Positions 15,957 through 47,690 of a stretch of 64,000 bases of DNA are shown here, piece by piece. The notes under the pieces were generated by a model. That model was not told where the DNA came from and did not search any database. It saw only the letters and a list, made by a program, of their open reading frames with translations. Made by a program: the position numbers and the translations under genes. Within the stretch, counting starts at the first letter, position 1. Each line of letters opens with the position of its first letter. Source of the stretch: Lepidodermella squamata (Eukaryota; Animalia; Gastrotricha); the NCBI GenBank assembly GCA_047495785.1, contig JBLDXI010000054.1:1550001-1614000 (forward strand), read 5' to 3'.

Positions 15957-16388
15957 TTCGCAATGGTTTATTCTTAATTGTTATTCTCGTAGTTTTATCT
16001 ATGTTTGAAAAATCCTGAAATGGATAAATGATCGAAAAACCATAAAAAAATTGAAAATTTAAAACCGTTTTTCAAACAAAAGTTTCGTTTCGCTTCGTTT
16101 GTTTGAGTAACGCATTGTTCGTTCATCTTCACAACTCTTCAAACAACCCTTCAAACAACATTAAGCAATAGAAGCTTGGACGTAACTTACCCGGACAACA
16201 TTTTTAACGATGCTTTAGGTTAGCACTGCGGCCGCAGCTTGGAGCAGGCAAAGCTCGAAATATGAGGGAATCACCGATGAATCAGAAAAGTTTGAGTCGG
16301 CAGAACAATTTAGTTCCCGGGTAACCCGAACAAAAAAAAGTTTATCAAATGCGACTTTTCTCGTGTTTTTTTACGTGTTTTCTAAGTA

Positions 16389-16723
16389 GGGTTTTTTGGG
16401 ATTTAATTTGAAATTAGCGTAATATGTCGAGAATATACTAATAGCTAGAAATATCGTAATTTGATTCAAATAATTGCTTAATTAAAAATGTGTCTCTGGC
16501 GGGGGTTGAACCATCGAACATTGATGCACCAGCCCAACGCCTCACCAACTACGCCACCAGCGATCACATAAATGCTGTTGTTTTTATTGGTTTATAAATA
16601 ACTTGCACTTTGGACTTGGTTGTTTTTTCGACGCCAAGTCCATATTTCATTTTCGAGATTTCTTGACATTGCAAAAAATCTCGACATTTTTACGCTAATT
16701 TCAAATTAAATCCAAAAGAACCC
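16389..16723. repeat. inverted-repeat element enclosing a tRNA-like sequence
   Basis: ggatttaatttgaaattagcgtaatatgtcgaga (16399-16432) pairs with tctcgacatttttacgctaatttcaaattaaatcc (16679-16713). Confidence 0.7.
16492..16563 (-). pseudogene. degenerate tRNA-like sequence (nominal anticodon GGT, Thr)
   Basis: 72 nt; TCGCTGG/CCAGAGA acceptor stem (1 mismatch), A-box TGGCGTAGTTGG, B-box GGTTCAACCC; D, anticodon and T stems mismatched. Confidence 0.6.
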
Positions 16724-20605: not shown

Positions 20606-20990
20606 TTCAATGTTACTTTTGCCCAATTATTGTGCTCAACCTTGTTTTGTCTAAAAATGGTTCTTGAAATAACATGAAAACACAATTGAACACAATGAAC
20701 ACAATTGAAAAACTTCCAGCGAACCTTTAAACAACGCTTTTTGAAAGTGAAGCAAAAAATATATTTTGCAGAGAAAGGGGCTGATTTATTGGCCTACCTA
20801 CTGATAACATGAGTGAACACAGCAATATATGCAAATATTCCAGCTGAAAGCTGAACACTGATCAACTAAATTTGCCTTTTGCAACAAAATCGCTAAGATC
20901 CATTTTTTCTCTTGATTTTTCATAATGCAGTACGAATGTCATTGAAATGAGCCCTGTGTATATCTCCAGAGGTTCAAAAACTTGATTCAG

Positions 20991-23811: not shown

Positions 23812-25189
23812 AAATAGATCAGCTCAACTGAAGCGAGTCTGCAGGCGGTGGCTAGGGCGTTGATTTATGCGTCTCAAAAAACGCGCATTTAGCACGTGCT
23901 TACGCACTTACCGGTTTTTTGTAACGAAAAAAATTAGTGCACCGGCCAGGGTGTCCGTTTTTACTATTAGGTGTAATGTCTGGGACCAGGCTTGCGTGCT
24001 GCGGTAATTATTGCACTATTGCGACATGAAATCAGGCGACGCGAAATTCAGCAAGCAGCCTTCATCGCAGATTTTGTCTGGTGGAATGGTGTCAAGTCCA
24101 GGTGTCACGCACGTCACGCCAAAAATAGTCCTTTCTCATGATCACGTGGTCAGTTTTATGATAATTAATAGAATTTCGACCTAGTTGATATGTACCAACC
24201 CCCTATCAGCATGACGTTCAATGCTAAGGTCGAAATTTATCATTTTAAGAATTATTCAAGATGTTTAAAAAACGTCAAGGTCGATTGAATTTTCTGTAGT
24301 TTGTGGCTGTCCGAAATAAGCCGGGTGATTTCGTTTTTTCTGGCTGAATTTCAGGACAAATGAGCAATTCAAATTTGTTCTAAACATGATCATCTAACTG
24401 AAGTCGATGCGCTCTTTCTTTTGCGCTTTTTTCCGGCTACAAAATACTGCAGAATAAAAAAGTTGGCAATTTTTTACCTCGGCGCACACCTGCGAAGAAG
24501 TGCAACCATTATTCGTAAAAAAATCCGTTTCTCATATTTCAGATGTCATTTGAAAGGCGGGACTCCGGACTATCTTCTACATTTTGAACGGTATTTTTAT
24601 CCACCAGGGTTGAGGAGAAACGCGCGCTCAAAGTCAAAAGTGTCCGAAATTATTCCGTCCGAAAAAGGACCGCGTTACAGTATGTGCAAATTTTAAAAAT
24701 CAAAACATTTTCAGGTTTTTTGGGGAAAGGTGTGTCTCTACAAGTGAAAATGAACCCATACATATTTTACGCTTTACGCTTCGATAATATCAATAAATGG
24801 TCTTGCCCGGGAGCCTCCTCCAGTCAAAGGAAAACAGCGATTGAGAAGATGCGTTATACGACTTTATTGATGCATGTGTGACTTTGAACGTGATCTGCAC
24901 ATTAACATTATCCAAGACTTTCACAGGTTTTGTTTTCAAAATCTAAGCCGACCTAATAAGGTCTTTTGGCATACCTAATAAGCACGACGGCCACAGGCTA
25001 ACTTAATGAGAACAATTCTTTAGAAGACTATGACTAATTAGGTTGCAAAAAAGTGAAAACAAAGGAACTGATAAAATTTTAAGCTGAGATTTAGCCGAAA
25101 AATAGCGAATAGTGAATATGACTCGGGAATTTGCGGTTTTGATTATTGCCCTCTACCTTGAGGCAAAGAAAACTATTAAGCTGTCGATG

Positions 25190-27606
25190 CTAGAAGCCAT
25201 CAGGATAGCCTTGACGACGGCGATCACTGACAGCTCTTATAACAAAGCGAGCCTGATTCGGGTCAAAAACACGCTCGATCGCGGTGATTGTGCTGAAAAA
25301 GCTGGCTGCATTCTCCAGCTGATCTACGTGGCCGAAATCCCGTTTCAGAACGGCAAGCAACTCTCTAGGCGCAGCATCTTCCTTCTCGTACTGAAGAGTT
25401 TCAGGAAACAGCTGATGATGCAGCCGGGAAGCATCAACAGCTTGCTTTATATCTTCCCTAAGAAACAAATTTCGAAACGCAACGTAGGCGACTCCAGTCG
25501 TAATCTTCGAACCACCGCCCCCTCCGATAACCAGCCTTGGGTAGTAGATAGATTTATCACCCTCACCGTGCTTCTGAAGAATGACAGTCGGGCACATTGA
25601 AGAGACAGGCCGTTTACCAGGTTTGATCACATTAGCTCGGCTGGGTGTTAGGCCCCAATTATTAGGCAATTTTGTGGTCGAAAAGTCGTCCATTTCATTA
25701 TTGAAAACAATACCTGTCCTTTTACCAACAATACCACTGCCAAAGCTGGTTGAAAAGGTTCAGCACAAGTTTTAGGGGTAATCTCGCCAAACTTACTAGG
25801 TATTGATGGTTGAAGTCAAAGCTACAGCATTCCCAGCTCCATCAATGATAGACATGTGCGAGGTCCCAGCTGTTCTAGGCTGCTGATACATCTCCATTGT
25901 CGCGTATTTGTTAGTGGGCTGGGTCGATGTGTCATTGATTAGGCTTCGAATGAATTCACTGTAATCATGCGATGTCAAATTATTGACTAAATCCTCCATT
26001 TCAGAATGGAAGGAACCATCCCCCATCAGGGTACGCTTTGCATAGGCGAATTTGAAAGATTCAATGAGGCGGTGGTAGGCCAGTGGGTTTACAACATCTT
26101 TCGCAGTAATATTGTACCCGGCCATGATATTCAAGATAAAAGCTAGAATAACCCCACTCCCAGGCGGTCTCATGCTGTATAGCTTGAACTCTTCCTTATC
26201 CGAGTTCGAAAACGAAAATGCGACTGGTTCACGCCATTCTGGTTTGTAGCGGCGAAGATCCTCAGCGGTAATCGGCGAGCCAGCATCTTTCAAATCAGCC
26301 ACTATGTCTTCAGCGAGGGATCCGTTGTAGAAATCGGATGGACCATTCAAAGCGATCCGTTCCATCGTCTTGGCCAAAGTAGGGTACTTCATCAAATCTC
26401 CTGTTCTATAAGACGCCCCAGTTGCTGGGTTTGTGATCAGCTTCCTAAAGATTATGAAAGCTGGAAGCTGAATTGTTTAACAAAACTGTTTATACCTGAA
26501 TTCGGTGAAAATCGATTGGTCTTGGACCTTGGAATTTGTTGAATTTATGAACTCATCGATAGCAACTTCGACTGATCTTGAAACTTTGAAGCCATCGATG
26601 CACAGTCGCTGGGCGACCTGAATCAGCTGAGACCACGGCAGTCGACCGAACTTCGCATGGACTTCCCCCAATCCGGCTACGAACCCTGGAACACCTATAG
26701 CGTAGCCACCTTTACACAAATTTACGCAGGTAAAGAATTCAATAATTATTCCAAGTTTACTATAGAGCGAAGATATTGTTTTGTCTTCGAACATGTCCTC
26801 AGTCGCTGACAAGTAGGCCACCTCCCTGGAGTCTATCGTATACGCTTTCTGGGTTTTCTGGTCCCAAATTGTCATGAAAAATCCACCTCCAACCCCTGCA
26901 AAGTGAATATTCACGACATTGTCGCAAAACGCTGTCGCCACGGCTGCGTCTACCACCGAACCACCCAATGCCAGGATTTCAGTCCCAACCTCGTTGCAGA
27001 TTCCTGCGACTGAATTCACAGCAGCAAACCGGTAGACTCCCATGGGCGATGGAGATACTAGGATAAATTCTTACAGTGAGAAGGTAAATGAGAAGCTTAA
27101 AACTCACCATATGTGAACTCGTTAGCTAAATTAGAGCTTGCTGCCGATTTTGGAATGACTTTATGACAAGTTGTTGGGTTAGACCAGTTGAGGCTTATGA
27201 CCCCACATAGAATAGTGCTACTACCGTTAATGAGCCTGTACCCATCATCACAGATAATTCTCCGCTGAGCTCCAATTCTCGAATCGCCGTTCAGAATTTT
27301 CCCATGCTCAACTTTTGGCGCGGGGCCACACGTTGGATTACAAGTTCCGAAAGGATCGGGTAGCCATAGACCATCCGATGAGCATGCTCGAGTTCTGACA
27401 CCCTCGCCTATCGCGAAACCTTCGAAACAAGATATTGATACATTAGTTCCTTCCTGGACTTCAGTTCTTTGTGGCAAGACAGTCCTCAGCTCCGTTTTAA
27501 GGTAGACTCCATTACTTAGGAATGGCAAGAAACATTTCGCGGATGAGCTTTCGAGGCATATCGAAACAATGAAGAGGATCACAATAGTTGTACACTGCTG
27601 GTTCAT
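25190..27606 (-). CDS. GGT: secreted Sushi(CCP)x2 - gamma-glutamyl transpeptidase, paralog 3
   Basis: MNQQCTTIVILFIVSICLESSSA signal, two CCP modules, DSREVA, GTSH, TSTIN, NNEMDDFS, PVSSMCP, GGGGS all intact. An alternative in-frame ATG lies 7 codons upstream. Confidence 0.92.
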
Positions 27607-27857: not shown

Positions 27858-29833
27858 TCATCCATTGAATAAGTATTCTATAAGAGTGTGAAATAGACCG
27901 AAAAAAACGCATGCAGAGCTTGCAAGCTTCCTTTCCGCCACGATATTTGTTAGCAGATAATCAGGAGGACCCCGTTTCCATTCCCAGATCTGGCGACGTT
28001 TTTCCTCGCTACAGGGACTGGTCATCAGCTCAAGACCAACCGCTTCAATGCACTCATTTGTGAAATTGCTTTTAAGCATTCCATTCTGGAAAAAATGAAG
28101 GATAAAGCTCAATTTATGACACCTTAAAAGTAAATACGGGTAAAAGGTGGAATATTTGATTTTCAGCATCTAAATTGCACAACTCTGTCTGAACTTTATG
28201 ATCTCCCTTGGTGACAAGGCAGTTTAGATCTTGGCGAACAAATCCAGATTTCGACATGTACCAGACTTGCTTCTCTGAAGAAAACTCGTTAAATTAGTAA
28301 TTGAGCGAAACATAAAATACCTTAACCATTTGAGTGCTGGCAGCGAGTCAGCTTCGCAGAATTGTCAATGCAAAGGTTAGTTCGAGTGCTGCGAATTACA
28401 CCAGAAGCATGAACATTCAAAGGGTCTAGTGTTTCCGGGGCCACATGCTCCAGAAACCAACTGAATGGTTTGCAATTCAGCTTCTCACGCAGCTTTTTCC
28501 GTTCAGTTACATTCGGGCTCGTCGAGACCGGAAGTGCTAGATATTTGTAGTATTGATGTTTGTACTCATCAAACCAAACCTCAGCGATTCGAATGTTGTT
28601 TCGCAGAAACGGGAATACAATCACGGCATACGGTTCAACGAATGGTAATAGATTTGGAGTGGGATTTTGATCAAACATATGACCAACCCGACTGCATGGG
28701 ATGATCTCCTGGCTACCACCGCAAAGCCATACTTTCATGGCGAGTTCGACATTTTCGGATCCCCAAACCTCCATTCCATCATCGAACATTCCTAGTTTTA
28801 TGAAATAGTCTCTTCTCATGACGTAGTGTCCAGTGATAGCAATAGGGCACTCTATAGGATCTGCAGCGGTCTTACGTTTCTCTCGACGCCATTTTGAGGT
28901 CTGAAGAAAAAAATTGATTGATGTTTTTGTTGGCAATCATATACTTGCATAAATCCATTGGAGCGTGAAATCCCAGACGAACTGAGTGGTGAATCCCGTT
29001 TCTCCATTGAAATGGAAAGCCAGAGTGTCGTGGCCAATCGAATCATGAACCGGCAGTACAACAATGGAATGCTTTTCATAGATCCTATATAAAAGAGGCT
29101 CTAGCCATCCATGAGTCACCTCCACATGGGCATCCAAGTAAGCGATTACTTCTCCAGTTGCTTGGCGAGCCGCGAAATTTCTGGCTTTTATAATTCCAAG
29201 CCGTTCTTTGGTTCGGAACATTTTTACTTTGGGAAATCGTTGCATATACCTCTCAAGCGGTTCTTTGAGATTCTCGTCGTCTGACATATCATCTACCAAT
29301 ATGATTTCTTTGAGAAGGGATGGTGGAGATCTATTGATAACCGAATGAATTGTCCTCAGCAGCATAGACCAAGCTTCGTTGTAAAAACAAATCAAAACTG
29401 ACGCTTGAGGCAGTTTTTCGATAGGGTACTTAATGTTCCGACATTCGAGAGGCCGTATATCAGGGAGAGATCGGTTTAGAGACATGAGATCGGAAGCAAA
29501 GGCGTTGTAGTGATGGGTGAAAATCTTTTCCGTGTATCTTTTCATATCCTGCCGGCCGAGCCGCAATTTATCGATCAATACAGGATCGCCATTCTTGCCG
29601 TATTTATCTGGAATAACAGGGTAACCATCTGCTCCTGGTTCGTTAAGCAGAGCTTTGAATGTTCCAGCTTTTGAGTAGAACTCGGCTATATAACCGGCGA
29701 TTTGAAAGATTTGATACAGCCATAGCGTGATGATTGTAAAATAAATCAGTGTAATCAATTTTCTAGGTGTTAACCGCTTGATTGTGGTTGCCAGCAGGCG
29801 ACTGTAATAAGACAGTGCGTGGAACAAAGACAT
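27858..29833 (-). CDS. GALNT: polypeptide N-acetylgalactosaminyltransferase-like (GT27), paralog A
   Basis: N-terminal [25 protein letters not shown] (DxH), WGSENVE, PCSRVGH, ricin-type lectin with QxW, C-terminal hydrophobic extension. 4 exons; the first intron is GC-AG. Confidence 0.9.
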
Positions 29834-30970
29834 TGTTATTAATTTTCATTACATGTGTTAATCATGTGTTAATGGGTAAACACACTGCCGACATCTCTCG
29901 CGTGGTTTTGTTCAACTGTTTACACTAGTTACATTGCTAACCGAAATTACATGTACGGTCCAGAGCAGCAACTTTGACAAAGCCAATAGGTAACTTCAAC
30001 AAAGGAATTCTAGCGGAAGACCTTGACTTTTTATTGACATCAGCCATAAGAGAATTACTTTCTTTGGGGGCTGTGATCTTACATTTATAAATTTGCCATA
30101 AAGAAACTTTATTACCAGTCTTATCATATCTAGAAAACCCAAGTGCGTACTACACAAAAGTTTTTTTTTTTTCAAAAGTACGCTTCCTTTGCTGTGGCAC
30201 TAGTTCACAGTTCACAAAGATACATTAAACGAGGATCCTGCTTCTCCAACTGACTAAAATGAACTCACGAGTATTGCCAGGTCGTTTTTCATGTATAATT
30301 CCCCATCTTCGTATTCCTATAATTAGTTACAATTTAATTACAATTACATTATCTATTATTCAATTTTTCAACTTCGTGCTACCATTTACAATTAAAAAAT
30401 AATGTTAGGGAGCACTCTTTTTGCCAAGAAATTCTGCCCATGCCAAGCTATATTGCATTCACACAAGATCACACTACTAAATCAGATATTTTAGGAGCCC
30501 GCTGTACCTAGGGCGGAACAATCAGGCCGTTCTCGCCATTGATTATTCTTTCTAAATGGTTTGATGCCTAATAATGGCCTTTGTAAAGCCGGAACGTCGC
30601 TGGAGTCTCTTAACGCCATGATTCTTTAGTAAATATTTCAGCAAACAGTCCCTCATCGCCCGATTGACATCACAGCCTGACAGTTGAAATAAAAATAATA
30701 GTTAAATGAGACTGGCTACATCTAAATTCGACACATTTTGGTTGATTGCAGGAGTTCGATATTCGACCCTACGTAGATCATAAGGGAATATGAAGTCCTA
30801 CGCGCGACCGATGCCACGTTATCCGCTACTCGCCATTTCCACCAACAAAATTTCATCAGTCCACGTTGAAAGTAGACACTAACGAAAAAGATTGGCAACA
30901 ATTTGTTCGCGGATGAGCATTTCGGACAATCGAGCTGAGGATCATAAGTGCAACAGATTTTTATTTGTCA

Positions 30971-32944
30971 TTATAAACTATTGAGTATTACGAGCACGAG
31001 AAAAATACCGGACACTGCACATGCGGCGCCTGAGAGTGTCAGTTGTTCTGCGATATTTTTAAGCAAATAATCAGGGGGACCTCTTTTCCATTCCCAGATC
31101 TGGCGACGCTTTGCCGCACTACAGGGACTCGTCACCAGTTCAAGGCCGGCAGCTTCAATGCATTCATTAGTGAAATTGCTTTTAATCATCCCATTCTGGA
31201 TAAAAACGAAGAATAAAGCTCAATTTATGACGTCTCAAAAGCTATTACGGGTAAAAGGTGGAATATTTGATTTTCAGCATCTAAATTGCACAACTCTGGG
31301 TAAACTTTGCGATCTCCCCTAGTGACAAGGCAGCGAAGATCTTGCCGAACAAATCCAAATTTTGACAAGTACCAGATTTGTTTTTCTGACAAGAGAATCA
31401 TTAAAAACGTATTTTCTCAGTAAAATGATTATACCATTTGAATGCTGGCATCGGATCAGCCTTACAGTATTGTCAATGCACAGGTTAGTGCCACTGCTCC
31501 GTATCACCCCTGAGGCATACACGTTTAGAGGATCCAATGTTTCTGGGGCCACATGCTCCAGAAACCAACTGAATGGTTTGCAATTCAGCTTCTCACGCAA
31601 CAGCTTCCTATCAGTTACATTCGGGCTCGTCGAGACCGGAAGTGCCAGATATTTGTAGTAATGATGTTTGTACTCATCGAACCACACCTCTGCGATTCTG
31701 ATGTTGTTTCGTATAAATGGGAACACAATCATGCGGTAGGTTTCACGAATGGCAGCAGATTTGGAGTGGGATTTTGATCGAACATATGGCCAACCCGGCT
31801 GCATGGAATGATTTCCTGGCTACCACCACAAAGCCATACTTTAATAGCGAGCTCGACATTCTCCGATCCCCAAACCTCCATCCCATCATCAAACATTCCT
31901 AATTTCATGAAATAGTCTCTTCTCATGACGTAGTGTCCAGTGATAGCAATAGGGCACTCTATAGGATCTGCAGCGGTCTTACGTTTCTCTCGACGCCATT
32001 TTGAGGTCTAAAGAAAATATTTGAAAAAGTTGTATTCTCAGCAATCATGTACTTACATAAATCCATTGGAGCATGAAATCCCAGACAAATTGAGTGGTGA
32101 ATTTGGTTTCTCCATGGAAATCGTAAGCCAGAGTATTGTGGGCAATCTCATCATGAACCGGCAGTACAACAATCCATTGCTTTTCGTAGATCCTATGAAG
32201 CAGAGGTTCCAACCATCCAGGGGTAACCTCCACATGGGCATCTAAATAAGCTATTACTTCTCCAGTTGCTTGGCGAGCCGCGAAGTTTCTGGCTTTTATA
32301 ATTCCAAGCCGCTCTTTGGTTCGGAATATTTTGACCTTCCGGAATCGCTTGAGATACTCCTCGAGTGGGGCTTTCAAATTCTCGTCGTCTGACATATCGT
32401 CTACCAGGATTATTTCTTTGAGTAGGGATGGTGGAGATCTGTTGATAACCGAATGAATTGTCCTCAGCAGCATAGACCAAGCTTCGTTGTAGAAACAAAT
32501 TAAAACTGAAGCTTGGGGTAATTTGTCGATAGGGTATACTATGTTGCGACATTCCGGCGGCCTGATGTCGGGAAGAGATCGGTTCAGAGACATTAGATCC
32601 GAAGCAAATGCGTTATAGTGATGGGTGAAGATCTTCTCAGTATATCTTTTCATATCCTGCCGGCCGAGCCGCATTTTATCGATCACTACAGGATCGCCAT
32701 TCTTTCCATATTCATCTGGAATTACTGGAGATCCTGGTTCGTTTAGCAACGGTCTGAATGTTCCAGCTTTTGAGTAGAAATCGGCTGCATAGCCGGCGAT
32801 TTGGATGAGAAGATACAGCCATAGCGTAATGATTGTAAAACAAATCAGAGTTACGAATTTTCTTGGTGTAAACCGCTTGATTGTTGTGGCCAGCAGACGA
32901 CTGTAATATGACAGTGCGTGAAACAAAGACGTTGTTATTTTCAT
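30971..32944 (-). pseudogene. GALNT: GALNT-like paralog B with a 1-nt frameshift (pseudogene or assembly error)
   Basis: Closely similar to A/C, but ttcgtgaaacctaccgcatgatt is 1 nt shorter than C's ttcgttgaaccgtatgccatgatt at ~31735-31748, giving PFVKPTA*. Downstream exons remain intact. Confidence 0.8.
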
Positions 32945-33909
32945 TACATATGCTAATTATGAGTTCACGGGTAAACGCTCTGCCGACAAACGTAGCAATT
33001 TAACATTTCAAGCCAATAGGTAGCTTCACAGTGAAGGAAGTAGGCTTTTCGCCGATTACAGTCGTTACCTTTTTATCTGATGCTTTTCCAGAGTCGTTTT
33101 ACTCGCACTTATTTACCTTCAGCCTTTCTCTTCTGATAGTTTTGGGGTAGGACTGCTACAACACAAAGAATTACAACACCGCGAGCAAAGCGAGATTTAG
33201 CAGTCGCTTTTTCGCAATCATTGGGTATAGAAATGCGCTGTCGCGACACCCCAGCACCCCTGTACTTCGCAGAATTTTACGCGGAAAACGACCCGGCAAT
33301 ACTTATGGGTTCATTTTGGTCAGTGCGCCAAGTAGGATCCTTGCACTTGGGGGTATTTTCGCGCGGGGGTATTTTAATGAGGGTGTTAATTAATTAACTA
33401 AATGAATTATGAAATTGTTATGTCGCTACATTGTGTCCAAGAAATTAGCAGTGTCTAACAAGAATTTGCTTACCGGCTAATTTTCCAGCCGTTGATGCGT
33501 GAGCGATATTGAGCGACAGCTCTGAAAAAGCAACCGAGTTTCATGTATGCAGCCTCGTAAAAATTTTTTACAATGTCACGGAGTAGCGTGTATACAGAAA
33601 TTTCTTGCACACACTGTAGGCTGTAACGTAAAAAAAACATGGATCATTGTTTGAAGTAATGGTATCCACTTCCTTCAGTTTGTCATCAAACATCCTAATT
33701 CATCATTATTTATCACCATGCTTTAGCTGGCGGTTTTTTCTTGATTTTAGGTCTGGATGTTGCTTTCCTACTTAGTGTGGATTCAACATTGTCATTGAAG
33801 GCCCAAAGGAGAGCTATGTCTACAGGTTTGAGAAATGCTGCCATTGTATTTATATGCTTCAGGCGTCAAATTAATAGGATTGACGTAGTGATTTTTAGAC
33901 CACAGTTCA

Positions 33910-34130
33910 ATTTATCTGTATGAACAGTGAACTATGCCAGGACCGCGTTTCCGTTGTTTTTCCGTTAATCTATGATAAATTAGGCTTCTCGGTTTTCTGG
34001 TGCCTGGTTCCATGTTTTCGTGAAAAATCCGCCTGCGTATATATGTCATGAGACATTCGTTCCTCACTGCAAAATTCGTTCGAGGTAAAGCATTCATCAG
34101 TTCCCATTTAAGCTAGACGCCAATGGATAA
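33910..34130 (-). mobile_element. possible degraded MULE transposase fragment
   Basis: LPRTNFAV (cf. MULE PRTNN) and PRSLIYHRL (cf. PRSIYRLI in the fragment at ~3060), interrupted by stops. Confidence 0.3.
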
Positions 34131-34223
34131 GATATGCAAGAATGCTTTCGCGGCGTTTCAGACAAGTCGAGCTGACGAACACGAGCAACACTTTGACTGA
34201 TTTTTATTCGCTATTATCAACCT

Positions 34224-36224
34224 TCAAATATTTATTGCGAGCGCGAGAAATATACCGGAAGTTGCACATGCGGCGCCTGAGAGTGTCAGTTGTTCTGCGA
34301 TATTTTTGAGCAAATAATCAGGAGGACCTCGTTTCCATTCCCAAATCTGGCGACGCTTCTCCTCGCTACAGGGGCTCGTCTTTAGTTCAAGACCAGCAGC
34401 TTCAATGCACTCGCCTGTGACGTTGCTTTTAATCATCCCATTCTGGCAAAAAATCAAAATTAAGCCCGATTCATGACTTCTTCAGGGTAAATACGGGTAG
34501 AAGGTGGAATATTTGATTTTCAGCATCGTAATCGCACAAATCGGCATGAACATTATGGTTTCCATTCGTTTGGAGGCAATTAGCGTCTTGCCGAACAAAT
34601 CCCGGTTTCGACAAGTACCAGACTTGCTTCTCTGACGAGAGAATTCGTTGAATAGGTTAATTATAGATTTCCCTCATAGACATAGATTTCCCTTACCATT
34701 TGAGTGCTGGCAACGAGTCAGCCTTACAGTATTGTAAATGCACAGGTTAGTTCCACTGCTCCGTATCACCCCTGAGGCATACACGTTTAGAGGATCCAGT
34801 GTTTCTGGGGCCACATGCTCGAGAAACCAACTGAATGGTTTGCAATTCAGCTTCTCACGCAACTGCTTCCTCTCAGTTACATTCGGGCTCGTCGAGACCG
34901 GAAGTGCCAGATATTTGTAGTATTGATGCTTGTACTCATCGAACCACACCTCAGCGATTCGAATGTTGTTTCGCAGAAACGGGAAAACAATCATGGCATA
35001 CGGTTCAACGAACGGTAGTAGATTTGGGGTGGGATTTTGATCGAACATATGACCAACCCGGCTGCATGGGATGATTTCCTGGCTACCACCACAAAGCCAT
35101 ACTTTAATAGCGAGCTCGACATTCTCCGATCCCCAAACCTCCATCCCATCATCAAACATTCCTAATTTCATGAAATAGTCTCTTCTCATGACGTAGTGGC
35201 CAGTGATAGCAATAGGGCATTCGATTGGGTCTGCAGCAGATTTGCGTTTCTCTCGGCGCCATTTTGGAGTCTAAAGAACAAAATTTTATTTTTTTATTTT
35301 TGCTAATACCTAAGTTTATCACGGCAAGCTTACGGAAATCCATATTAGTGTGAAATCCCACAGGAATTGAGTGGTGAAACCCGTTTCCGGATTGTAATTG
35401 TATGCCAGAGTATCGTGACTTATCGAATCATGAACTGGCAGTACAACAATCGATTGCTTTTCGTAGATCCTATGGAGCAGAGGTTCCAACCATCCAGGGG
35501 TAACCTCTACATGGGCATCTAAATAAGCGATCACCTCGCCAGTTGCATGACGAGCCGCGAAGTTCCTCGCTTTGATAATTCCAAGTCGCTCTTTGGTTCG
35601 GAATATTTTCACCTTAGGAAATCGCTTTAGGTACTCCTCGAGTGGTGATTTGAGGTTCTCGTCGTCTGACATATCATCCACCAAAATGATTTCTTTGAGA
35701 AGGGATGGTGGAGATCGGTTGATAACCGAATGAATTGTCCTCAGCAGCATAGACCAAGCTTCGTTGTAGAAACAAATCAAAACCGAAGCTTGGGGCAACT
35801 TATCGGTAGGATATTCAATGTTTCGACATTCCGGCGGCCTTATGTCTGGTAGAGATCGGTTCAGAGACATTAGATCCGAAGCAAATGCGTTATAGTGATG
35901 GGTGAAGATCTTCTCAGTATATCTTTTCATATCCTGCCGGCCGAGTGTTAATTTATCGATCAGCACAGGTTTCCCGCTTTTCCCATAATCATCTGGAACC
36001 TCGCTGGAGACATTACCACCTGGTTCGTTTAGCATAGCTTTGAATGTTCCACCTTTTGTGTAAAAATCGACCACGAAGTCGGTGATTTGAGATAGTCGAT
36101 ACAGCCATATTGCGATTGTTAAGCAGCAGATCGAAGTAAGTAAATTTCTAAGTGAGAATCGCTGGATTGCAGGGCGAAGCAAGCGGCTGTAGTATGACGG
36201 TGAGTGAAACAAAGTCGTCCTCAT
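34224..36224 (-). CDS. GALNT: GALNT-like (GT27) paralog C
   Basis: Same 4-exon structure; DAH, WGSENVE, VGH; ricin lectin; tail [19 protein letters not shown]. Confidence 0.9.
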
Positions 36225-36682
36225 GTATACAGCTCTTCATTTAACATGTTAATTATCTTAGTATATCAATTGCATTGTGTGAGCAATACCGGTATTTTTA
36301 CGCTCGCTTAGAAAGAATTACCTACACTGCTCGCCAGCATGTTCATGTTTGCTACAGCGCAGTGAATATCACTAGGGAAAAAACAAAGCCAAACAAAGTA
36401 AAGCCAAACAAAGTAAAGTATGACGAGCGAAGGACCTTTTTGACTTTTTGGCCAACATTGTTTGTGCGAACTCGGCTGTTTTATCTTTTGAGATGCAATC
36501 GCAAGCCCCTGACAGGGCTGGATGGGAGAAAGAAGAGCAGTTTGGCAAAAGTGAGATCCGAGATGACGATTCATACTTTGCTTCGTCAAATACAAACTTC
36601 GAATTCCCTGATCGTTGCGTTAGTCATAATGAAAGAAGCCCAGAGGTAATAGAGGACAACATCATTTACTAATGAATGCTTT

Positions 36683-38682
36683 TTATTCGACTCGCCGATT
36701 TTGAAGACTCATCAGCACGGAGAAAAGAAATAGGCAACAATTCAGATACCTCAAGTTTGTAATTGATCTTGCTGCTGCACCGTTTTGCAGCATATAATCC
36801 GGCGGCCCACGCTTCCATTCCCAAAATTGGTAGGGTTTTCCCATGCTGCATGAACTAGTTATCAGGTCGAGACCCGACGCCTCGAGGCATTCGTTCGTGA
36901 AAGTGCTTCGAATCATTCCATTCTAGAACGAAACAAATAATTGTTAAACTGTCGAAATAGATGAAATAGAGTTTCTCACCGGAAGAAGGTGAAATCTTTG
37001 AATATCGGCGTCGTAGTCGCATGTTTGAATGAGAACCCTATGCTCCGCCATAGTCATCAGACAGATGTGATCCTGACGAATGAAACCTAACTTTGTCATG
37101 TACCAGATTTGATTCTCTGAAAAACTCAAAGATAAAGAAAGTCAGTGTAGAAACAGGAACGCATACCGTTCCCATGCTGGCAACGGCGTAGCCTTCCTGA
37201 ATCATCGATGCAAAGATTGGTTCCAGCACTTCGAATTACACCAGAGGCATGAACATTGAGTGGATCTAAAGATTCCGGGGTCACATGCTCCAGAAACCAA
37301 CTGAAAGATTTGCATTTGAGGTTTTGACGCAGCTTTTTCCGTTCGGTAACATTCGGGCTGGTTGAAACCGGGAGAGGCATGAACTTGTAGTAATGATATT
37401 TGTACTCATCGAACCAAACTTCAGCGATTCGAACATTGTTTCGGAGATATGGAAAAACAATCAAGGCGTAAGGCTCTACATAGGGCAGTAGATTAGGGGC
37501 TGGGTTTGCGTCGAACATGTGACCAACTCTACTGCATGTAACGATTTCCTGACTCCCACCACACATCCACACTTTTACACCGAGTTCAACGTTTTCCGAG
37601 CCCCAAACCTCCATTCCATCGTCAAACATTCCTAACTTCATGAAGTAGTCCCGTCTCATAACATAGTGGCCAGTGATTGCAATTGGGCATTCTATGGGGT
37701 CTGCTGGAGATCTTCTCTTGCTTTGTCGCCATTTTGAAAGCTGGAAAAGCGATTTCAACAAATTTTACAAATATTTAGCAAGAAATCTCACGTAAAGCCA
37801 CTTGAGCGAGAAATCCCAGAGAAATTGCGTAGTGAGCTGAAATTCCAGGCCAAAGTTGTAAGCCAAAGTATCATGCCTTATCGAATCATGAACTGGCAGC
37901 ACAACAATGGATTGCTTTTGATAGATTCGATAAAGAAGAGGCTCCAGCCATCCTTCGGTCACCTCAACGTGAGCATCCAAATAAGCGATAACCTCGCCAG
38001 TCGCTTGCTTTGCCGCAAAGTTTCTCGCCTTGATTATGCCTAATCGTTCTTTAGTCCTGAATAGTTTCACCTTAGGAAATCGCTTCAGATAGCCCTCAAG
38101 CGGGGCTTTTAGACTCTCATCATCCGACATGTCATCAATCAAAATGATTTCCTTTAAAAGAGATGGCGGTGATCTATTGATTACTGAGTGGATCGTCCTG
38201 AGAAGCATGGACCAGGCTTCGTTGTAGAAACAAATCAAAACCGAAGCTTGGGGCAACTTATCGGTAGGATATTCAATGTTTCGACATTCCGGCGGCCTTA
38301 TGTCTGGTAGAGATCGGTTAAGTGAGATTAGGTCGGAGACAAAGGCGTTGTAGTGATGTGCGAAAATGTTCTCCGTGTAGCGTTTCATTTCTTGCCGCCC
38401 GAGTTGTAGTTTATCGATGACCACGGCAGTTCCATTCTTCCCATAGATATCCGGGATGATTGGAAGGCCATTTGCGCTCGGCTCGTTCAGTAGAGCCTTA
38501 AAACTTCCAGATTGTGAATAGAAATTTAAAATGCCGTCAAGGATTTGTAAAATTTGATACAGCCATACTGCGATGATTACATGGCAGATCAGTAGAACGC
38601 AACGTCTAGGCGTTAATCTCAGGAGTTTGATGACTAGCAAACGGCTGTAGGAAGTAAGCGTACGATACAGGGCCCTCTTCAT
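36683..38682 (-). CDS. GALNT: GALNT-like (GT27) paralog D
   Basis: DAH, WGSENVE, VGH; ricin lectin; tail NGAAARSITNLRYLNCCLFLFSVLMSLQNRRVE*. Confidence 0.9.
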
Positions 38683-38874
38683 TCATGTTATACTATACGC
38701 ACTAACAAACTATTTTTTCATACTCAAATGCGGCGTTGTTTTTGTGCAGGTAAAAACGGTCTTTGTCCTTTGTTTTCAACCAGCTTTACTATGAAATTGA
38801 ACGCAAGCCGGTAGGACTAAGATAACGTCAACAGCTTCACTGAACCATACTTGCTTCGGGTGTCAAACTTTCAT

Positions 38875-40947
38875 TCATTTTATTTTGCAGATTTGCATCA
38901 ACTCAAATTGAGCAATAGTAAAGATAACGATCAAAATGATGAAAATATCTGCTACCCAAGCTGCTAATTTTGTTCTAGGCCTTGGATACCGCTTTATCGG
39001 CGGAAATTCATTATAGAGGTGTAAAGGAATGTCATTCGGTTTTCGTCTATACCAAAGCCAGCGCTGGTATTCGTTGTCTTCATCACAAGGGCTCATGAGA
39101 AGTGATTTCTTGTCTCGGCCGAGTTCCACACATCTGTCATGGCTCACACTTCGGAGCTGTTTGGTCTGAAAACGAAAAAAACTGCATAAAATTGCCATAG
39201 AAATAGTCTTTGAGGTTACTTTGAGGTATTGAAAGACTTGATTCTGCATTTTACCATCACAGGTTCGGACTTCGAGAGGTTTCCCATCGCCTTCGTAGTG
39301 GAAACAGCCTACATCGCGCCTAATCTCGCTATTATTCGTTAGAGCCCAGAATTGAGTGCCTATTACCAAAATTTCCGTTAAGGAGATTTTCAGTATAGGA
39401 GTATACTAACCTGACCAAGGAATTCTCATCCATGTTATAACGTTTTGCTGCTCATCAGTCGTTGCATCGAGAACCCTTCTCGTAACCACACTTTGAATTT
39501 CACCAAAGGCCAATGCCTCGCCATAAGCGTATAATTCAGGCAGAACATTTTGAAGGTACCATTCGAAAGAGTGGCATTTCAATCTCTGTCGCAAGGCTTT
39601 TTGTTTGCTTAAATCTCCAGGGTTAAGACGAAAGTAGCTTTGCTCGTAGAAGTAGTATTTGTAGTTATCCATCCAAACCTCAACGACTCGAATGAGGTTC
39701 GTAAAAATCGGATCGATTCCAAAGCGAAGCCAGTCCCATGTATAAGGCATTTTATTTCGAAATATGTGCCCGACACGGCTGCATGGTATGACCTCGATTC
39801 TGCCGCCACACATCCATACTTTCAGGCTTAGCTCGATGTTTTCCCCGCCTAACCAGAATTTCAAAAATTTAGCAATTAAGATAGATTTTGTGTAAATCAC
39901 CCCAAACGTTCATTCCTTCATCATAGAGACCCAGATGATGGAAAAATTCTCGGTCTATGGAGAAAAGACCACCGGCCAAGGCTGCGTTAGGTATAGGATC
40001 GCTTTCAGATTTTCGGTGCTTCTGTATTCTATCGGGTATCTGAAAAAATTGTATTGTTCAACTTTTCTCACAATTTTATGCCAACTTACTGGTCTCAGCC
40101 ACCGAAACAGGAGCCTCCAGTCGAAAAATCCAACATTCTCATGATTGGCAGATCGATACTCCAGATTATCCCAGTCGATGATATCAATTATGGGTGCTAC
40201 AACTGTAGTCCTATTTTGGTAAATTCGGTACAAAAGTGGCTCCAACCACCCGGGAGAACATTCGCAATGCGAATCGAGAAAGGTCAGAGTCTGGCCTTTC
40301 GCAGCATTGATACCCAATATTCTAGCTCGGATTAGGCCTTCTCTTTGCTTGGCCCGAATCAATTTAACTTTGGGCAATGTGGCGATGTAGTCGTCCAAGG
40401 GTTTCTTCAAGTAGTCATAGCTCGAAAAATCGTCTACTAAAATGATTTCTCGAATCAATCGTTCCGGGCTTTGATTCAAGACGGAATGGACTGTTCTTAT
40501 CAGCGTGGACCAAGCTTCGTTGTGGAAGCAAATGATAACAGAAGTATCAGGCAATTCTTCGACCGGGTATTGAGGCCCGACCCTGCATTCGTTCATCCTA
40601 ACATCTGGGGCAGATCGATTGACTGAAATGAGTTCTGATACGAATTCATTGAAGCCATGCCGCTCGAAACCTCGAGCCCGTTTTCTAGCATCGACCCAGC
40701 TTAATTTTGATGTATTAACCACAGTAGCCATTCCATTGAATCCAGGGTCGATGCTATTGAAAATACCGGGCGGTTCGAAGTAATCAAGCTTTGGTCTCTG
40801 GAGTAAGTCATAAGTTACGTAATCAGCTGTCAAGTCGAAAATGTGGCATAATTCCGCCCAATTTCGCAAAATTGCGAGGAGAAAGACGGCTATTACAAAA
40901 TACCATGGCCAAACAATTTTCACCATGGAGTAGTGAGGTATATTCAT
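38875..40947 (-). CDS. GALNT: polypeptide GalNAc-transferase paralog E (canonical catalytic motifs)
   Basis: FHNEA, GLIRAR, FLDSHCE, LAGGLF, WGGENIE, VGHIFR; spliced frame checked; ricin lectin followed by a C-terminal hydrophobic segment. Confidence 0.92.
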
Positions 40948-41109
40948 GTTAAGCGTAGTAGCATCGCTGTATATGCCGTGTAAGTCATTGTTCTTAAAAT
41001 GTTGGCTTCTCTCTCGTAAACAAATGCGCCACGTCGTCGTACGAAAAAAACAGTTCTCAATTGATAAAGAATTTATTTCAGCAATAGCGTAAAAATTACG
41101 GAAGAAAAG

Positions 41110-42975
41110 CTACCGCGTCAGAAATACGAAGCATACGATCGAAAAATAAGAAATTAATTTTTGAATGTCACGGCTGTTCGCCGCATTGAGCAGCGCTTCG
41201 GGTAAATCTGAGCGTAAATGAAGCGGCAAGCCATCGGGACGCTTTCTCCACAACCATTGCTGGCGCCGGCTCGACGGCAAGCATGGTTTCATCTCGATAA
41301 CCGACGTCCTGCGGCTTGCTTCGATGCAAGTATCGCTATTGGCGTGACGAATGTGTTTGCTCTGAAAATACAGATCTCAAATCTTTTCCGATGCAAAAAG
41401 GTTTAAAACATACTGGAAGATACTCAAACCGCTGGGTGTTCGAGTTCGGATCACAGCGAGCTGCCATTAGGGTTCGGTTGACATAATCCATACACAAATT
41501 TCCATCATGCTTGAAAAGCCCATTTTTCGTTAACAATAGGAATTGAAAGCCTAAGAAACATTGTTCAATTTTTGAGATAATTCCGCAAGAGCCGACTTAC
41601 CTCCATTATGGGAGCACCTTCTTAGGGTGACCGGGTTACTGGGACCTCGGGGGGCCTCCAGACAGCTTTCCCTATTGCTAACCTGGCCAGCGTAGACCGC
41701 ATCGCTCGGCACCTCAAGTTCCGGGAAGACATTATTCAAGTACCATTCGAAGGATTTACACTCCAATCTCCTCCTAAGCTCCTTTCTCGAGGTTACATCG
41801 CCATAATCTCCTATCCGGTAATCGAACCTCTCGTAGTAGTAATGTTTGTAACCATCCAGCCAAACCTCGGCTAAACGGATATTGTTCTTCAGCAGGAAAT
41901 TGTTGCTGTTAACCCAACTGTAAGGCTGGGTGCTTCGGAAGATGTGCCCGACCCTACTGCATGGCATTATTGCGATACTACCGCCACACATCCAAGTTTT
42001 GAAACTGAGCTCAAGATTCTCCCCGCCCCAGTTATCCATCTCTCGGTCGTAGGTGCCTAATTTGAAGAAGAAATCTCTGTGTATCGAAAACAACCCTCCA
42101 GCCATGGTAGGTGACGGTATAGGGTCTGTCGCTCTATTCGGCCGTTTGTCATATTTCTCCGCGGTGATTGCATACCATTGAAAGGACATGTCCCAATCAA
42201 AACCGCCAGTGTTGTACTGAGAAACACTGCCATATTTGAAGTTATTTACGTCGATAATGTCGATGATCGGTGTTACTACGTTGGTCTTACTCAGGTGGAT
42301 CTGGTGAAGCATTGGTTCAAGCCAACCGGTCATGCATTCGCAGTGGGAGTCTAGAAAAGTTAAGACGTCGCCCCTAGCATGGTCGACCCCGAAGAGTCTG
42401 GCTCTTATCAAGCCTTCTCGTTTCGGCGTCCTTAATAGCCGAACTTTCTTCAGCGTACTGACGTAGATTTCGAGCTTTAGCCCCAGGTCAACATTGCTGG
42501 AGAAGTCGTCAATCAGTAAGACCTCTTTAAGGAGTCTTGGAGGGGTGCGGTCTATTACTGAATGCACAGTCCTAACCAGCGCGGAAAAGGCTTCGTTGTG
42601 GAAACAAATTATCACACTTGCATCAGGTAGCTTTTCGATAGGGTATTCAATTGATTTGCATTCGTCGTATCTTATGTCATCCAGAGTTCGGTTAACAGCG
42701 ATTATATCTGATAAGAATTGGTTGTAGCCATTTTTTCGATAGCCTCTGTTATATTCGTTCAACTGCTTCCATGTTAATTGGTCAGTGTCGAGATTTGCCG
42801 CATTTCCGCCCTCGCCGTCTTTGGCGATTTTTGTGAAATTTATGCCGAGACGAGGATCGGGTTCTGAAAGACGTGGTACTGTGAAGATGATGAGTAGGAT
42901 AACGAATAGTGAAGTTCCGAGTATTAAGGCGGCTGTAAAACGGCTTTTTCTAAGCCGGCGCTTGGCGTAGACCAT
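41110..42975 (-). CDS. GALNT: polypeptide GalNAc-transferase paralog F (most canonical)
   Basis: [44 protein letters not shown]; ricin lectin; tail [27 protein letters not shown]. Confidence 0.93.
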
Positions 42976-43767
42976 AAATTCCTAATTATTTTTCTACATG
43001 TTCCTAAAAAATTGTAGAAAAAATGCAAAATTTAATTTAGAGCTGTAGATGAAAAAAACGCGGTTTCAAGCAGTTTTTCATTAAATTGGCTGTAGTAGGC
43101 CATGCACTGTAGTGTTTGCTAACAAGTGTGAGCGTAAATTCATCAATACAACGTCTCGTTTCACATTATTTCGCGTGTTCACATTTTACGCACATGCACA
43201 CGCAGCATACACGCATATTCAAGAAATATACGTACCTACTACCTACGTGAGAAGGACGCCTATTATGAAGGGTAGAAAATAATACGAGGAAGTATGCACA
43301 GCGAAACATAATATGTGGATGTGATGAAATTTGAAACCAGCAGTGCGAAAGACAAGAGCATATTTTTAAATGATATTATTGCAAAAGGATAATTGCAATA
43401 ACCGATTGTGATATTACACCTAATAAATATTCTGTTAATGAGAGCGCATCGAATGAATGACTGCACGGGACGTTATAATCAGCATAGCAATTTTCTATAT
43501 TTCAGATTATTGCTGAATTCAGCAGTCAGCACGCACTCAAGCGCCTTTGGGCAGAAAAATTATCGATTTTATGACCATCGCGATAGCCTTTTCAATACGC
43601 ACCGGTTAATAGTAAATATCCAAATAATAATGAAAAAATCGATTAAAACTCATGGCACACCTTGATAAACACTGCTTGTAGTTGTTTACAGCGGTTGAGT
43701 AAAGCTTGTGAAAGATAAACATGTAAGGACTCTCATGTAGGTCAGGTGAGGATAACGTCAACAAAAA

Positions 43768-45614
43768 ATGCCGGTTATCACATTAAACCGCAATGTCTTG
43801 CATAAAATCCTTATCACTGTAGGCATTCTCTGGTTCCACGGTTTCATCGCTCTTTTACGGGACAATTTTTCTAATGACGTCAAGATTGCGAAAAATTTGG
43901 AAGCTGTCTCAGATCATCATGGTAAAAACGGCGTTGCAGTGAATTTTCGAAAATACAAACTTGGATACAGCGACTTTGCGAGATACATTGACAGCTATTG
44001 GAACTATGGCTTGAATGAAATATCCTCAGAATTGATGTCGCTCCACAGGTCGATTCCAGATTTCAGGCCTGAAAGCTGCAAGGCGGCAAACTATCGACTA
44101 GAAAAGCTGCCCGATGCTTCGATAGTCGTGGTTTTTCAAAATGAAGCTTGGTCTGTTTTGTTGAGGACAATTCAGTCAATTTTCGACCGATCTCCGTCAG
44201 AGTTACTCCGCGAAATCATTTTAGTCGATAATCACTCTACTATGGATCATTTGAAACAACCCTTGGAAGCTTTTGTCAGTATGCATGATAGAATTCGACT
44301 GATTAGAACAGAAGGCCACAAGAGTATGGAGAGCGCGAAGATGTTAGGCGCAAAATTGGCTACGGGCAAAGTCATCGTATTTCTGAGTTCGCACATCGAA
44401 TGCGGTCATGGTTGGCTTGAACCGTTGTTGCATCGAGTTCATGAAAACAAAACGAACGTAGCTATACCTTTCGTGGACAAGATTGAACCCGAAACAATGG
44501 AATACATCGAAGGTGAGCGTGGAAGAGTTGCAGGGTTTGGATGGGATCTTATGCCCAAATGGATAAACAGAGTTTGTTATTTTAATTGAGCTTTATAAAT
44601 GAATCGTTAATATCAGGTTAAGGTAGATCGTGGCGATGATTCACCGATCCCAACGCCCGCAATTCCTTATGGTATTTATGCTATTGATCGGGAATTTTTC
44701 TTTCACGTCGGGGGCTATGAGCAATCCAAAGGTTTGTCCTTCTTCCTGTTTTGGATCAAGTTAAATTTTCTGTTCAAGGAGATGAAACAATAGAAATCAG
44801 CTTGAAGGCTTGGCGATGTGGGGGTCGTCTAGAAATAATTCCATGCAGTCACGTTGGTCGAATCGAAAAATTACCGAACATTTTCTCGCCCAGTAATTTC
44901 GAAAGTCATAGAGCAAACTTGAGGGTAGCTGCTATGTGGCTTGATAATTACCAACGTTATTTCCATGAATACCAGCAAAATCACTTGAATCTGTTTGAAA
45001 GACTAGCCGTGAACATGCTGCACTCGAAACGCGAATATGGCAAGCCTTCAGTTCAGAATTGTAAATCTTTCGATTGGTACCTCGAAAACGTCTTTCCGGA
45101 ACTGTTTGTGCCCGAAAAGTCTTTGGCATCTGGCCTAATCAAAGCAAAAGAGTTAGGTCTGTGCATTAAAAAGAAATGGGACGAACCTTCCGTAGAACTA
45201 CAACCTTGCGATTCCAACTCAGGTAAAATTCACCATTTTCCAACTCTGGTTTAACCGTTATTTTTTAAATCAAAGAATTTAGCTCTTGGCATTTGAGTCG
45301 CAACAGGCGCATAAGGAGGGATGACGACATATGCTGGGGAGCGTGGGGTGTAAAGAAAATCTACCTTGTTCGATGTGACGAGTTTAGAGAGGAACAGACT
45401 TTCGAATACCTCGAGGTATTATTTTTCATCATTTTTCCAAAGAATCTCCTCAAATCCAATTGTTTACTAGTCTGATCAGATTCGCAACGATTTGACTGGG
45501 AAATGCATCGAATATGATAAAACTGAGATCAACCAGACGGAATGTGATTCATCAAATCCAAGGCAGCGTTGGCTCTGGAATAGAAGACCCAGTTCTGCTA
45601 TCGTAGTTATTTGA
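43768..45614 (+). CDS. GALNT: GALNT-like paralog G, predicted catalytically inactive
   Basis: GT27 fold motifs present, but DxH is SSH, WGGEN is replaced by KG|DET, VGH is VGR, and GLIRAR is SMESAK. Lectin exons splice in frame to TGA at 45612-45614; no C-terminal tail. Confidence 0.85.
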
Positions 45615-45789
45615 ACTTCATTTTCATTTTATTGTGATAAATTTTCAATCCGCTTGTATTTATGCATCTTTCATTCATAATAAACAAACCGCGCGCAGGT
45701 TTATTTCATTGTAAATATAAAAGGCATGGCTAGTTTTTATGGTCAAAATAAAGTTAAACAACTATAATATGACATAGCTATGGCTTACA

Positions 45790-47690
45790 ATGGCTGTTAT
45801 TTCACGCAGGCGAATAAAAAAACTGCTGTTACTGTTCAACTTAATTTGGCTTATCTACGTCCTGCGGGAGATCGCCTATGCTGTTGATTTCTACCTCCGC
45901 GATAGGCCACATGACGTCTTTCAATTTCACAGCCCTGAGTTCGATGCAGTCAATGAAATCCCGGATAAATATGGCGCGAATGGCGCGAAAATCCTGATTA
46001 AAAAGGAGAATTTGAGCCGGGAAGATGCGAAGCGATATACCGAAGGCTACTTCACCTACTACTTCAACGCTTTTGGCTCAGATCTGATGTCCTACCACCG
46101 ATCGATTCCTGATTATAGAGACCAGCTTTGCCGCGACATTGTCTATCCTTTGGAGAAAATGCCAGATACAACGGTTATCATTTGCTTCTACAATGACGCT
46201 TGGTCTGTTCTGTTAAGGACTATGCATGCTGTCCTTGATCGGTCGCCCGATTCTCTACTCAAAGAAGTGCTTTTAGTCGACGACTCTTCAACAATGCCTC
46301 ATCTGCATAAACCACTCGAGGACTATATCGCGAAGTTCCCAAAGGTTAGACTGATTCGGACTAGTAAAAACGAAGGTTTGAGTCGAGTTCATAACTTCGC
46401 GGCGGATCATGCGAAAGGGACCGTCCTCACGTTTCTCGATTCCCATGTGGAGGTTCACAAAGGATGGCTCGAGCCGCTTCTTTACGCGATCCACCTTAAT
46501 GAAACAACCGTAGCCCAGCCTAGGATAGATACGGTTGATGGTGACGAATTGAATTACGTTCCAAGTCATGACGATTATGCAGGCGGTTTCTCGTGGGATG
46601 ATCTCGGGCACACTGGTCTTTATGTAAGTGCATTCCACTATCTTCGATTTATCTTATGATCTGTGAGTAGTTTACAAAATGGAGACTTGGGAAGCGCGAC
46701 AGACGGGTAGATCCTATTCCAATACCTATGACTTTCGGAGGCCATTTGGCGATTCATCGCGACTTTTTCAACAAACTAGGACGTTATGACCCTGGTTACG
46801 AAGTCTGGGGTATGAAAATGATATGAAATCGCTTTCGAAACTTTTCATAAATTTCCCAGGGACTGAAAATACCGAAATAAGCTTCAAATCTTGGATGTGT
46901 GGCGGCAGCATGTTTCTAATGCCTTGCAGTCGAGTAGGTCATGTTAGTCATCGAAGCGTCTTCCCGCGACTGCCCTGGGCTAGATCCTACTTCGCTTTCA
47001 ATCCTTTGTTCTACCTTCGAAATAACATCCGACTCGCTGAGGCTTGGATGGATGAATACCGACTCTACTACTACCGAAAAATGCCAGTGAAGCTAAGCAC
47101 AAATGTCGACGTCTCAGACCGAGTGGACATCCGAAAGAGATTGGGCTGCAAATCTTTCAAGTGGTATCTCAACAATGTTTACCCGGAGGCTTTCAATCCT
47201 TTGGATGTATCTGCATCTGGACTAGTCCGAAATGTCGAAAATGGACTGTGTTTAGATTCGGAAAATGGGAAACTAATCGCTTCAAGCTGTTATGAAGAGC
47301 TGGGTAATAAGACACCGTTTTAGAGTATGGCTATTACAGCAATGATATAATTGTGTTTAGAAAGTCAAAATTGGTATCTAACTGAGCGAAATCAAGTTCG
47401 TCGCGATGAAACATGCTGGTCAAGCAGCGGGGAGGGACAAGTAGACGTAATTTCATGCTCAATCGACCAAACAAATCAGAAATTCGAGTATGGCAAGGTG
47501 AAACTATTTCACTACTGAAAATTCTGTTTCCAATAGTTTTTGTTTCCTATAGAATGGTCAGATAGTAAATATGGACTATGGGTTATGCTTGGAGGCTGTT
47601 GGCTATGATGTTGCGATGCGAAAATGCAATAGTAACGCACGCCAGAAATGGAAATGGAAGCGTGGCCCCCCTGATTACTTGAGACTTTGA
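45790..47690 (+). CDS. GALNT: GALNT-like paralog H
   Basis: FYNDA, FLDSHVE, TFGGHL, WGTENTE, VGH; ricin lectin; ends [11 protein letters not shown] with no hydrophobic tail. Confidence 0.88.

Follow-up and report, generated by a model that had tools for sequence, protein, structure and literature searches.

The 64,000-nucleotide window of the Lepidodermella squamata genome analysed here (Gastrotricha; GenBank assembly GCA_047495785.1, contig JBLDXI010000054.1, positions 1,550,001 to 1,614,000 of the forward strand) holds eight tandem genes for GT27 polypeptide GalNAc-transferases, which fill window positions 27858-47690 and are named A to F (minus strand) and G and H (plus strand). In A to F, the last lectin exon stays in frame for 35 to 58 residues beyond the final QxW motif of the ricin lectin, through a hydrophobic stretch, to the stop codon. 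G and H stop right after the lectin, 11 and 9 residues past the motif. Canonical GT27 members end at the ricin lectin domain. We lean towards the view that the tails are genuine C-terminal signals, kept by selection, that anchor type II GT27 enzymes of a lineage-specific expansion in the membrane. An earlier reading of the DNA letters (the sequence-only reading) had already described the tails of A to F and their absence from G and H, and its interpretation of them as glycosylphosphatidylinositol (GPI)-signal-like is partly supported by the sequence comparisons described below.

All five tail strings quoted by the sequence-only reading are located in frame on the minus strand, at 30974-31036 (B), 34227-34283 (C), 36704-36784 (D), 38911-38958 (E), and 41113-41190 (F). 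Three-frame views show that, in each of A to F, the tail and the gamma QxW motif belong to one exon, uninterrupted by a stop codon. A canonical AATAAA sits between 10 nt before and 35 nt after each of the six stop codons, so the tail exons are terminal exons. The tail of F (41113..41244, minus strand, as are all tails of the array) is composed of a PLHL motif, an NAANS cluster, a polar spacer, and a GPI-signal-like hydrophobic end of 12 to 13 residues, with AATAAA at 41072-41077. The tail of B (30974..31084) has an SGAAC small-residue cluster followed by an 11-residue hydrophobic end, is GPI-signal-like by eye, and is followed by AATAAA 8 nt past the stop. The tail of C (34227..34331) carries the same cluster and a 9-residue hydrophobic end, shows a 4-nt difference in length from that of B close to the end, and has one AATAAA 10 nt before and another 18 nt after the stop. 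In D (36686..36811), an NGAAA cluster precedes a hydrophobic stretch of 12 to 15 residues and six hydrophilic residues, an arrangement that is ambiguous between GPI-like and transmembrane (TM)-like; here, AATAAA overlaps the stop. The tail of E (38878..39051) consists of the PLHL motif, a proline/basic linker, a TM-like helix of 19 to 21 residues, and a charged end of 9 to 11 residues. The tail of A (27861..27974, ending at 27861) runs for 38 residues after the QxW motif, with a 12-residue hydrophobic core, then 10 mixed residues, and AATAAA 11 nt past the stop; it is the weakest of the six, as had been noted from the sequence.

A six-frame search of the genome (121.2 Mb in 151 contigs; all sequence searches used single exons or open reading frames [ORFs] as queries) yields about 28 GT27 genes, and the C-termini of 27 paralogs were read with a lectin hidden Markov model (HMM) built from 100 homologues, combined with manual inspection. 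Twelve of the 27 have a tail, with an extension of 33 to 60 residues and a hydrophobic stretch in every case: A to F, then c2.2, c2.4, and c2.5 from a neighbouring cluster 13 kb outside the window, and L032, L038, and L040. The remaining 15 end 5 to 29 residues past the motif without a hydrophobic stretch. The length after the QxW motif is bimodal over the 27 paralogs, and all extensions longer than 30 residues are hydrophobic. The 12 tailed paralogs differ in this from canonical GT27 enzymes: in the 120 best homologues from other phyla, the median distance from the last QxW to the C-terminus is 16 residues, and 119 of them have no hydrophobic stretch; the single GPI-like tail belongs to a homologue that resembles a truncated gene model. 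Post-lectin tails are not common among these homologues, in agreement with the sequence-only reading.

A PLHL-type motif lies between the lectin and the tail in six tailed paralogs (as PRHF in c2.4) and is also present in the tail-less paralog L035 (as PLHM), and it is found in none of the 120 homologues from other phyla. L035 is the nearest paralog of F; a search for a hidden tail exon in it found none, and the gene stops after the PLHM extension. The 3' untranslated regions (UTRs) at the GT27 loci are extremely short: in 9 of the 12 tailed genes, AATAAA overlaps the stop or lies at most 35 nt from it, and the overlap in C, D, and E is with the final codons or the stop itself. The tailed genes c2.4 and c2.5 converge and meet at their stops (L008:3029-3265 on the plus strand and L008:3263-3493 on the minus strand, G000:C54 about 1633943-1634407), and the AATAAA of either gene lies within the hydrophobic-tail coding DNA of the other, on the opposite strand.

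Equal hydrophobicity is found in 10% of 2,243 random ORF ends taken from the GT27 loci. The 3' flanks of the tail-less paralogs, read in three frames, are open for 20 codons in 11 of 42 frames and both open and hydrophobic in 2 of 42 (about 5%). When A to D and E/L038 are each collapsed, about 8 independent tailed lineages remain among about 23, which is far over the expectation of 5 to 10%. The tail pattern exceeds chance. This enrichment bears on an explanation of the tails as non-functional read-through, in which stop-codon shifts into short, T-rich 3' UTRs would repeatedly append short peptides that are hydrophobic by accident, tolerated or slightly deleterious, and quick to decay. The scarcity of flanking frames that are open for at least 20 codons and hydrophobic argues against such an origin, as do the presence of a hydrophobic stretch in every extension beyond 30 residues and the PLHL motif common to six paralogs.

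Alkaline phosphatase (ALP) is GPI-anchored in animals, and the ALP genes of the same genome were used as positive controls, two of the five being readable to the end (the other three, in tandem on C32, contain an additional intron). Both readable genes, located at L049 (G000:C7:677174-677305 and downstream) and L048 (G000:C24 about 1307000-1307250), have at their C-terminus an NNS or NSAS cluster, then a spacer, and then a hydrophobic end of 11 to 19 residues, which is followed by AATAAA in one of them. A search of the genome for 5'-nucleotidase, intended as a second GPI control, gave no match, and one for GT31 galactosyltransferases, a family of type II enzymes, gave matches. The genome contains genes for PIG-T and GPAA1, two subunits of the transamidase. 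The rule set for GPI signals is home-made and asks for small residues at omega and omega+2, a spacer of 3 to 12 residues, and a core of 8 to 22 residues ending at most 4 residues from the C-terminus; it labels 2.3% of random ORF ends GPI-like. F, c2.2, c2.4, c2.5, L032, and L040 pass it, together with both ALP controls. B and C are GPI-like by eye only, with their SGAAC cluster merged into the core by the rule set. The hydrophobic stretch lies at or near the C-terminus in all of these eight paralogs (B, C, F, c2.2, c2.4, c2.5, L032, and L040), and their tails look like GPI-attachment signals in anatomy and resemble the genome's own GPI signals.

In E and L038, 11 to 15 residues follow the hydrophobic stretch, and both tails look like true C-terminal transmembrane helices with a short charged cytosolic end. 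The helix of E has a 19-residue core with an insertion energy of about -1.2 and a charged end of 11 residues, and that of L038 occupies the same position with a weaker core (+3.8), which is broken by Q. On this membrane-insertion scale, which is rough and a guide only, E and marginally B fall into the transmembrane range, and the other tails lie near the ALP control on C7 (ALP_C7). The hydrophobic stretches of A and D are trailed by 6 to 10 hydrophilic or mixed residues, and these two tails are best read as degenerate or ambiguous. The proposal that the tails are GPI-signal-like holds up for most of them through the anatomy shared with the two ALPs, and does not for E, which is better read as a transmembrane helix, nor clearly for A and D.

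The tails might also be functional hydrophobic peptides that do not anchor the protein, such as a cleaved propeptide, a signal for retention in the endoplasmic reticulum (ER), quality control, or degradation, an oligomerisation segment, or a segment packing against the lectin. The cores are short (9 to 15 residues), the conserved PLHL-proline linker could serve as a processing or binding site, and B, C, and A have no omega site that passes the rule set, all of which would suit such a role. We nevertheless judge it improbable, considering that the same anatomy is found on the alkaline phosphatases of the same genome, that the helices of E and L038 are of full length and finish in charged residues, and that a role of this kind is absent for GT27 from our literature searches and from established knowledge.

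A public sequencing run, X1, behaves as RNA, with GT..AG joints that are present in X1 and missing from the DNA run X2. X1 confirms the introns of D at 36923-36979, 37117-37166, and 37741-37791, those of E near 39166-39220, 39359-39409, and 39848-39899, and those of F at 41362-41413 and 41550-41599; the confirmed introns in the array are 50 to 57 nt long with GT..AG ends. At the 3' end of F, X1 has a depth of 14.3 across 41050-41249, which drops to 0.5 below 41050, and no joint is found below 41361. Transcription of F therefore runs without splicing through the tail (41113-41244) and the stop to the 3' end at AATAAA. The possibility that the tails belong to separate downstream exons or lie beyond a splice donor is rejected for F by the RNA and is unlikely for the others, which have poly(A) signals at their stops. 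Within 39442-39769, the X1 contigs and the window sequence disagree at several third-codon positions of E (for example, 39529, 39532, and 39535), so the RNA derives from a diverged strain or allele and not from the sequenced individual.

RNA confirms the tail of F alone. The tail region of E is outside the X1 coverage, and the sole D contig on the last exon stops at 36750, right before a GT, leaving 36650-36749 uncovered. This contig end may reflect isoform switching, divergence between strains, or a break in the assembly. The expectation of the sequence-only reading that the tails are not spliced out is borne out for F; the hydrophobic stretch of D is unconfirmed in RNA, as is the uncovered tail of E. 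The tail of D contains a candidate in-frame GT..AG stretch of 42 nt (36708..36749, minus strand; unconfirmed), the removal of which would take out exactly the hydrophobic stretch. GPI-anchored forms of some other proteins are chosen by alternative splicing, and the hydrophobic stretch might similarly be optional, with a mini-intron alternatively spliced within the tail to give an anchored and a soluble isoform. The termination of the D contig exactly at AG|GT, with no coverage beyond, and the exact, in-frame excision of the hydrophobic residues would be in keeping with such a switch. We regard it as very unlikely, however, with the 42-nt stretch being shorter than every confirmed intron and having a weak acceptor, no joint being reported there in D or in the tail of F, and the contig end being explicable by a strain difference or a break in the assembly graph.

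Selection on the tails is best seen in E and L038, which group as sisters in the tree of the catalytic domain (SH-aLRT 96) and have saturated synonymous sites (pS 0.86-1.09). Both keep an open extension of 58 to 60 residues with a PLHLY motif, a proline/basic linker, and a co-positioned hydrophobic helix, and the extension is 36% identical between them, versus 51% for the lectin repeat. Because this layout is kept despite the saturation of synonymous sites, the extension of the pair is not neutral drift, and it is constrained. A profile of the six tail exons searched against 1.84 billion representative proteins matches multi-repeat lectins through the gamma repeat only, a blank that is not evidence of absence; none of its matches spans PLHL and tail, and the sole match with a hydrophobic end is unrelated. 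A short-query search with the last exon of B gives zero candidates.

Several points weigh against the tails being selected anchoring signals, among them the RNA coverage of D and E, the home-made rule set and rough energy scale, the reading of B and C by eye, and the residues trailing the cores of A and D, as described above. In the young copies A to D, the tail DNA diverges about as fast as the 3' UTRs, with indels, and the tail of A looks decayed. On the paralog tree, the deep branches of which are weakly supported, the trait is patchy, with at least six changes. The tailed genes lie in a lineage-specific expansion, and the paralogs L035, L037, and L043, which group with foreign orthologues, are tail-less. 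The T-rich terminal sequence favours hydrophobic codons, and neither the profile nor the short-exon search found a relative outside the genome on which conservation could be checked. The UTR-like divergence, the apparent decay in A, the interleaving of tailed and tail-less paralogs, and the poly(A) signals that overlap or adjoin the stops are also what favours the read-through explanation. The retention of the E/L038 extension at saturated synonymous divergence and the match of the tails to the genome's own GPI signals speak against it, in addition to the enrichment, and we consider read-through unlikely to account for the tails. The description of the trait as old and selected in the sequence-only reading is borne out only in part: E/L038 and the strong enrichment over the null expectations favour it, and the patchy distribution and the tails of A to D weaken it.

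The array genes can be assigned to GT27 by every defining feature examined. Their closest homologues are mollusc, nematode, and arthropod enzymes with 50 to 56% identity, and no same-species protein or close relative is found in the protein collection searched, where the best identity is 56%. Pfam identifies a GT-A catalytic domain, a Gal/GalNAc-T motif region, and a ricin lectin. The GT-A domain (Glycos_transf_2, Pfam ID PF00535) has E values of 1e-29 in F and 2e-33 in A, and the DxH metal-binding motif is readable as DAH or DSH in the exon 1 translations of A to F. The Gal/GalNAc-T motif (Glyco_transf_7C, Pfam ID PF02709) has an E value of 3e-6 in F, above the cut-off, and of 3e-4 in A, slightly below the cut-off. 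The ricin B-type lectin (Pfam ID PF00652) is matched in the last ORF of E, and the lectin HMM matches the gamma QxW repeat of A, C, D, E, F, G, and H, that of B being read directly. At the N-termini of A to F, a basic N-terminus followed by 17 to 25 hydrophobic residues indicates a signal anchor by a hydrophobicity criterion only.

On the minus strand, gene A (27858..29833) is defined by ORFs, Pfam, and tblastn to the homologue P0014, and it combines the predicted N-terminal signal anchor, the GT-A domain, and a compact ricin lectin with its weak tail. Genes B (30971..32944) and C (34224..36224) are defined by ORFs, tblastn, and three-frame reading, and genes D (36683..38682) and E (38875..40947) by ORFs, three-frame reading, and RNA-confirmed introns. 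Gene F (41110..42975) is supported by ORFs, homologue search, Pfam, and RNA-confirmed introns. The tail-less paralogs G (43768..45614) and H (45790..47690) follow on the plus strand. Three Sushi-GGT paralogs adjoin the array (window 8314-27043, minus strand) and all end in ...QGY(T/P)DGF without a hydrophobic tail; therefore, the trait is not common to neighbouring secreted or type II enzymes.

If the tails are membrane-anchoring signals, as we favour, the N-terminal signal anchor would bring the enzyme into the ER, with the catalytic and lectin domains facing the lumen. The C-terminus of the tail would likewise lie in the ER lumen, as expected from a type II topology. In B, C, F, c2.2, c2.4, c2.5, L032, and L040, the module is composed of a small-residue cluster, a short polar spacer, and a hydrophobic end of 9 to 15 residues, which would be too short for a stable membrane helix and would match the anatomy recognised by the GPI transamidase. 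These short-tailed paralogs would receive a GPI anchor and would then be held by two anchors, in a tetherin-like manner, or, once the stem is cleaved, by GPI alone. The presence of N-terminal signal anchors makes a two-anchor topology possible. In E and L038, the module would be a complete transmembrane helix ending in a short, charged cytosolic segment, giving two membrane spans and a large lumenal loop, and A and D would have a weak or intermediate module. Translation of the tails, their transamidation, and the topology and location of the proteins are predicted here from sequence features. We propose only tentatively that these paralogs form a clade of mucin-type O-glycosylation enzymes that is doubly tethered (by a type II anchor together with GPI, or by two transmembrane spans), or a set of GPI-anchored cell-surface GalNAc-transferases or lectins released from the first anchor by stem cleavage.

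The tailed paralogs share with canonical GT27 enzymes (GALNT/pgant/gly) the signal anchor, the GT-A domain with DxH, the Gal/GalNAc-T motif, and the C-terminal ricin beta-trefoil with QxW, and depart from them in the tail. Golgi glycosyltransferases are single-pass type II proteins, the lumenal end of which is free. GPI-anchored ectoenzymes like alkaline phosphatase are cell-surface hydrolases that enter the ER by a cleaved signal peptide. The GPI-signal-like GT27 paralogs appear to have the same C-terminal signal anatomy as the genome's own ALP genes, and differ from these enzymes in retaining the type II anchor and in being members of a family of Golgi glycosyltransferases. The combination of a predicted N-terminal signal anchor and a C-terminal GPI-signal-like tail on one chain resembles tetherin (BST-2), which is unrelated in sequence and fold and has a coiled-coil ectodomain in place of the enzyme and lectin found here, where the GPI anchor is predicted only. 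A type II anchor together with GPI has been described in a review as "almost unique" to tetherin, the other cases being a form of PrP, ponticulin, Sm23, and NcSRS2 (PMC3989765). Our full-text literature searches found no GPI-anchored or C-terminally anchored GalNAc-transferase or glycosyltransferase, and the L. squamata genome paper (PMC11660948) mentions neither introns nor glycosyltransferases nor GPI.

If the double tethering or the surface display is real, either topology would be one undescribed for any Golgi glycosyltransferase family, with the catalytic-lectin unit held against the membrane or exported to the gastrotrich cell surface. A second anchor would fix the orientation of the enzyme and its distance from the membrane and would prevent its loss by stem shedding. 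It could also direct an O-glycosylating enzyme or lectin to the cell surface by way of a lipid anchor. An enzyme subfamily with a type II plus GPI layout would represent a natural experiment in glycosyltransferase topology, and it would offer a first view of the glycobiology of Gastrotricha, a phylum without an annotated proteome in the databases searched.

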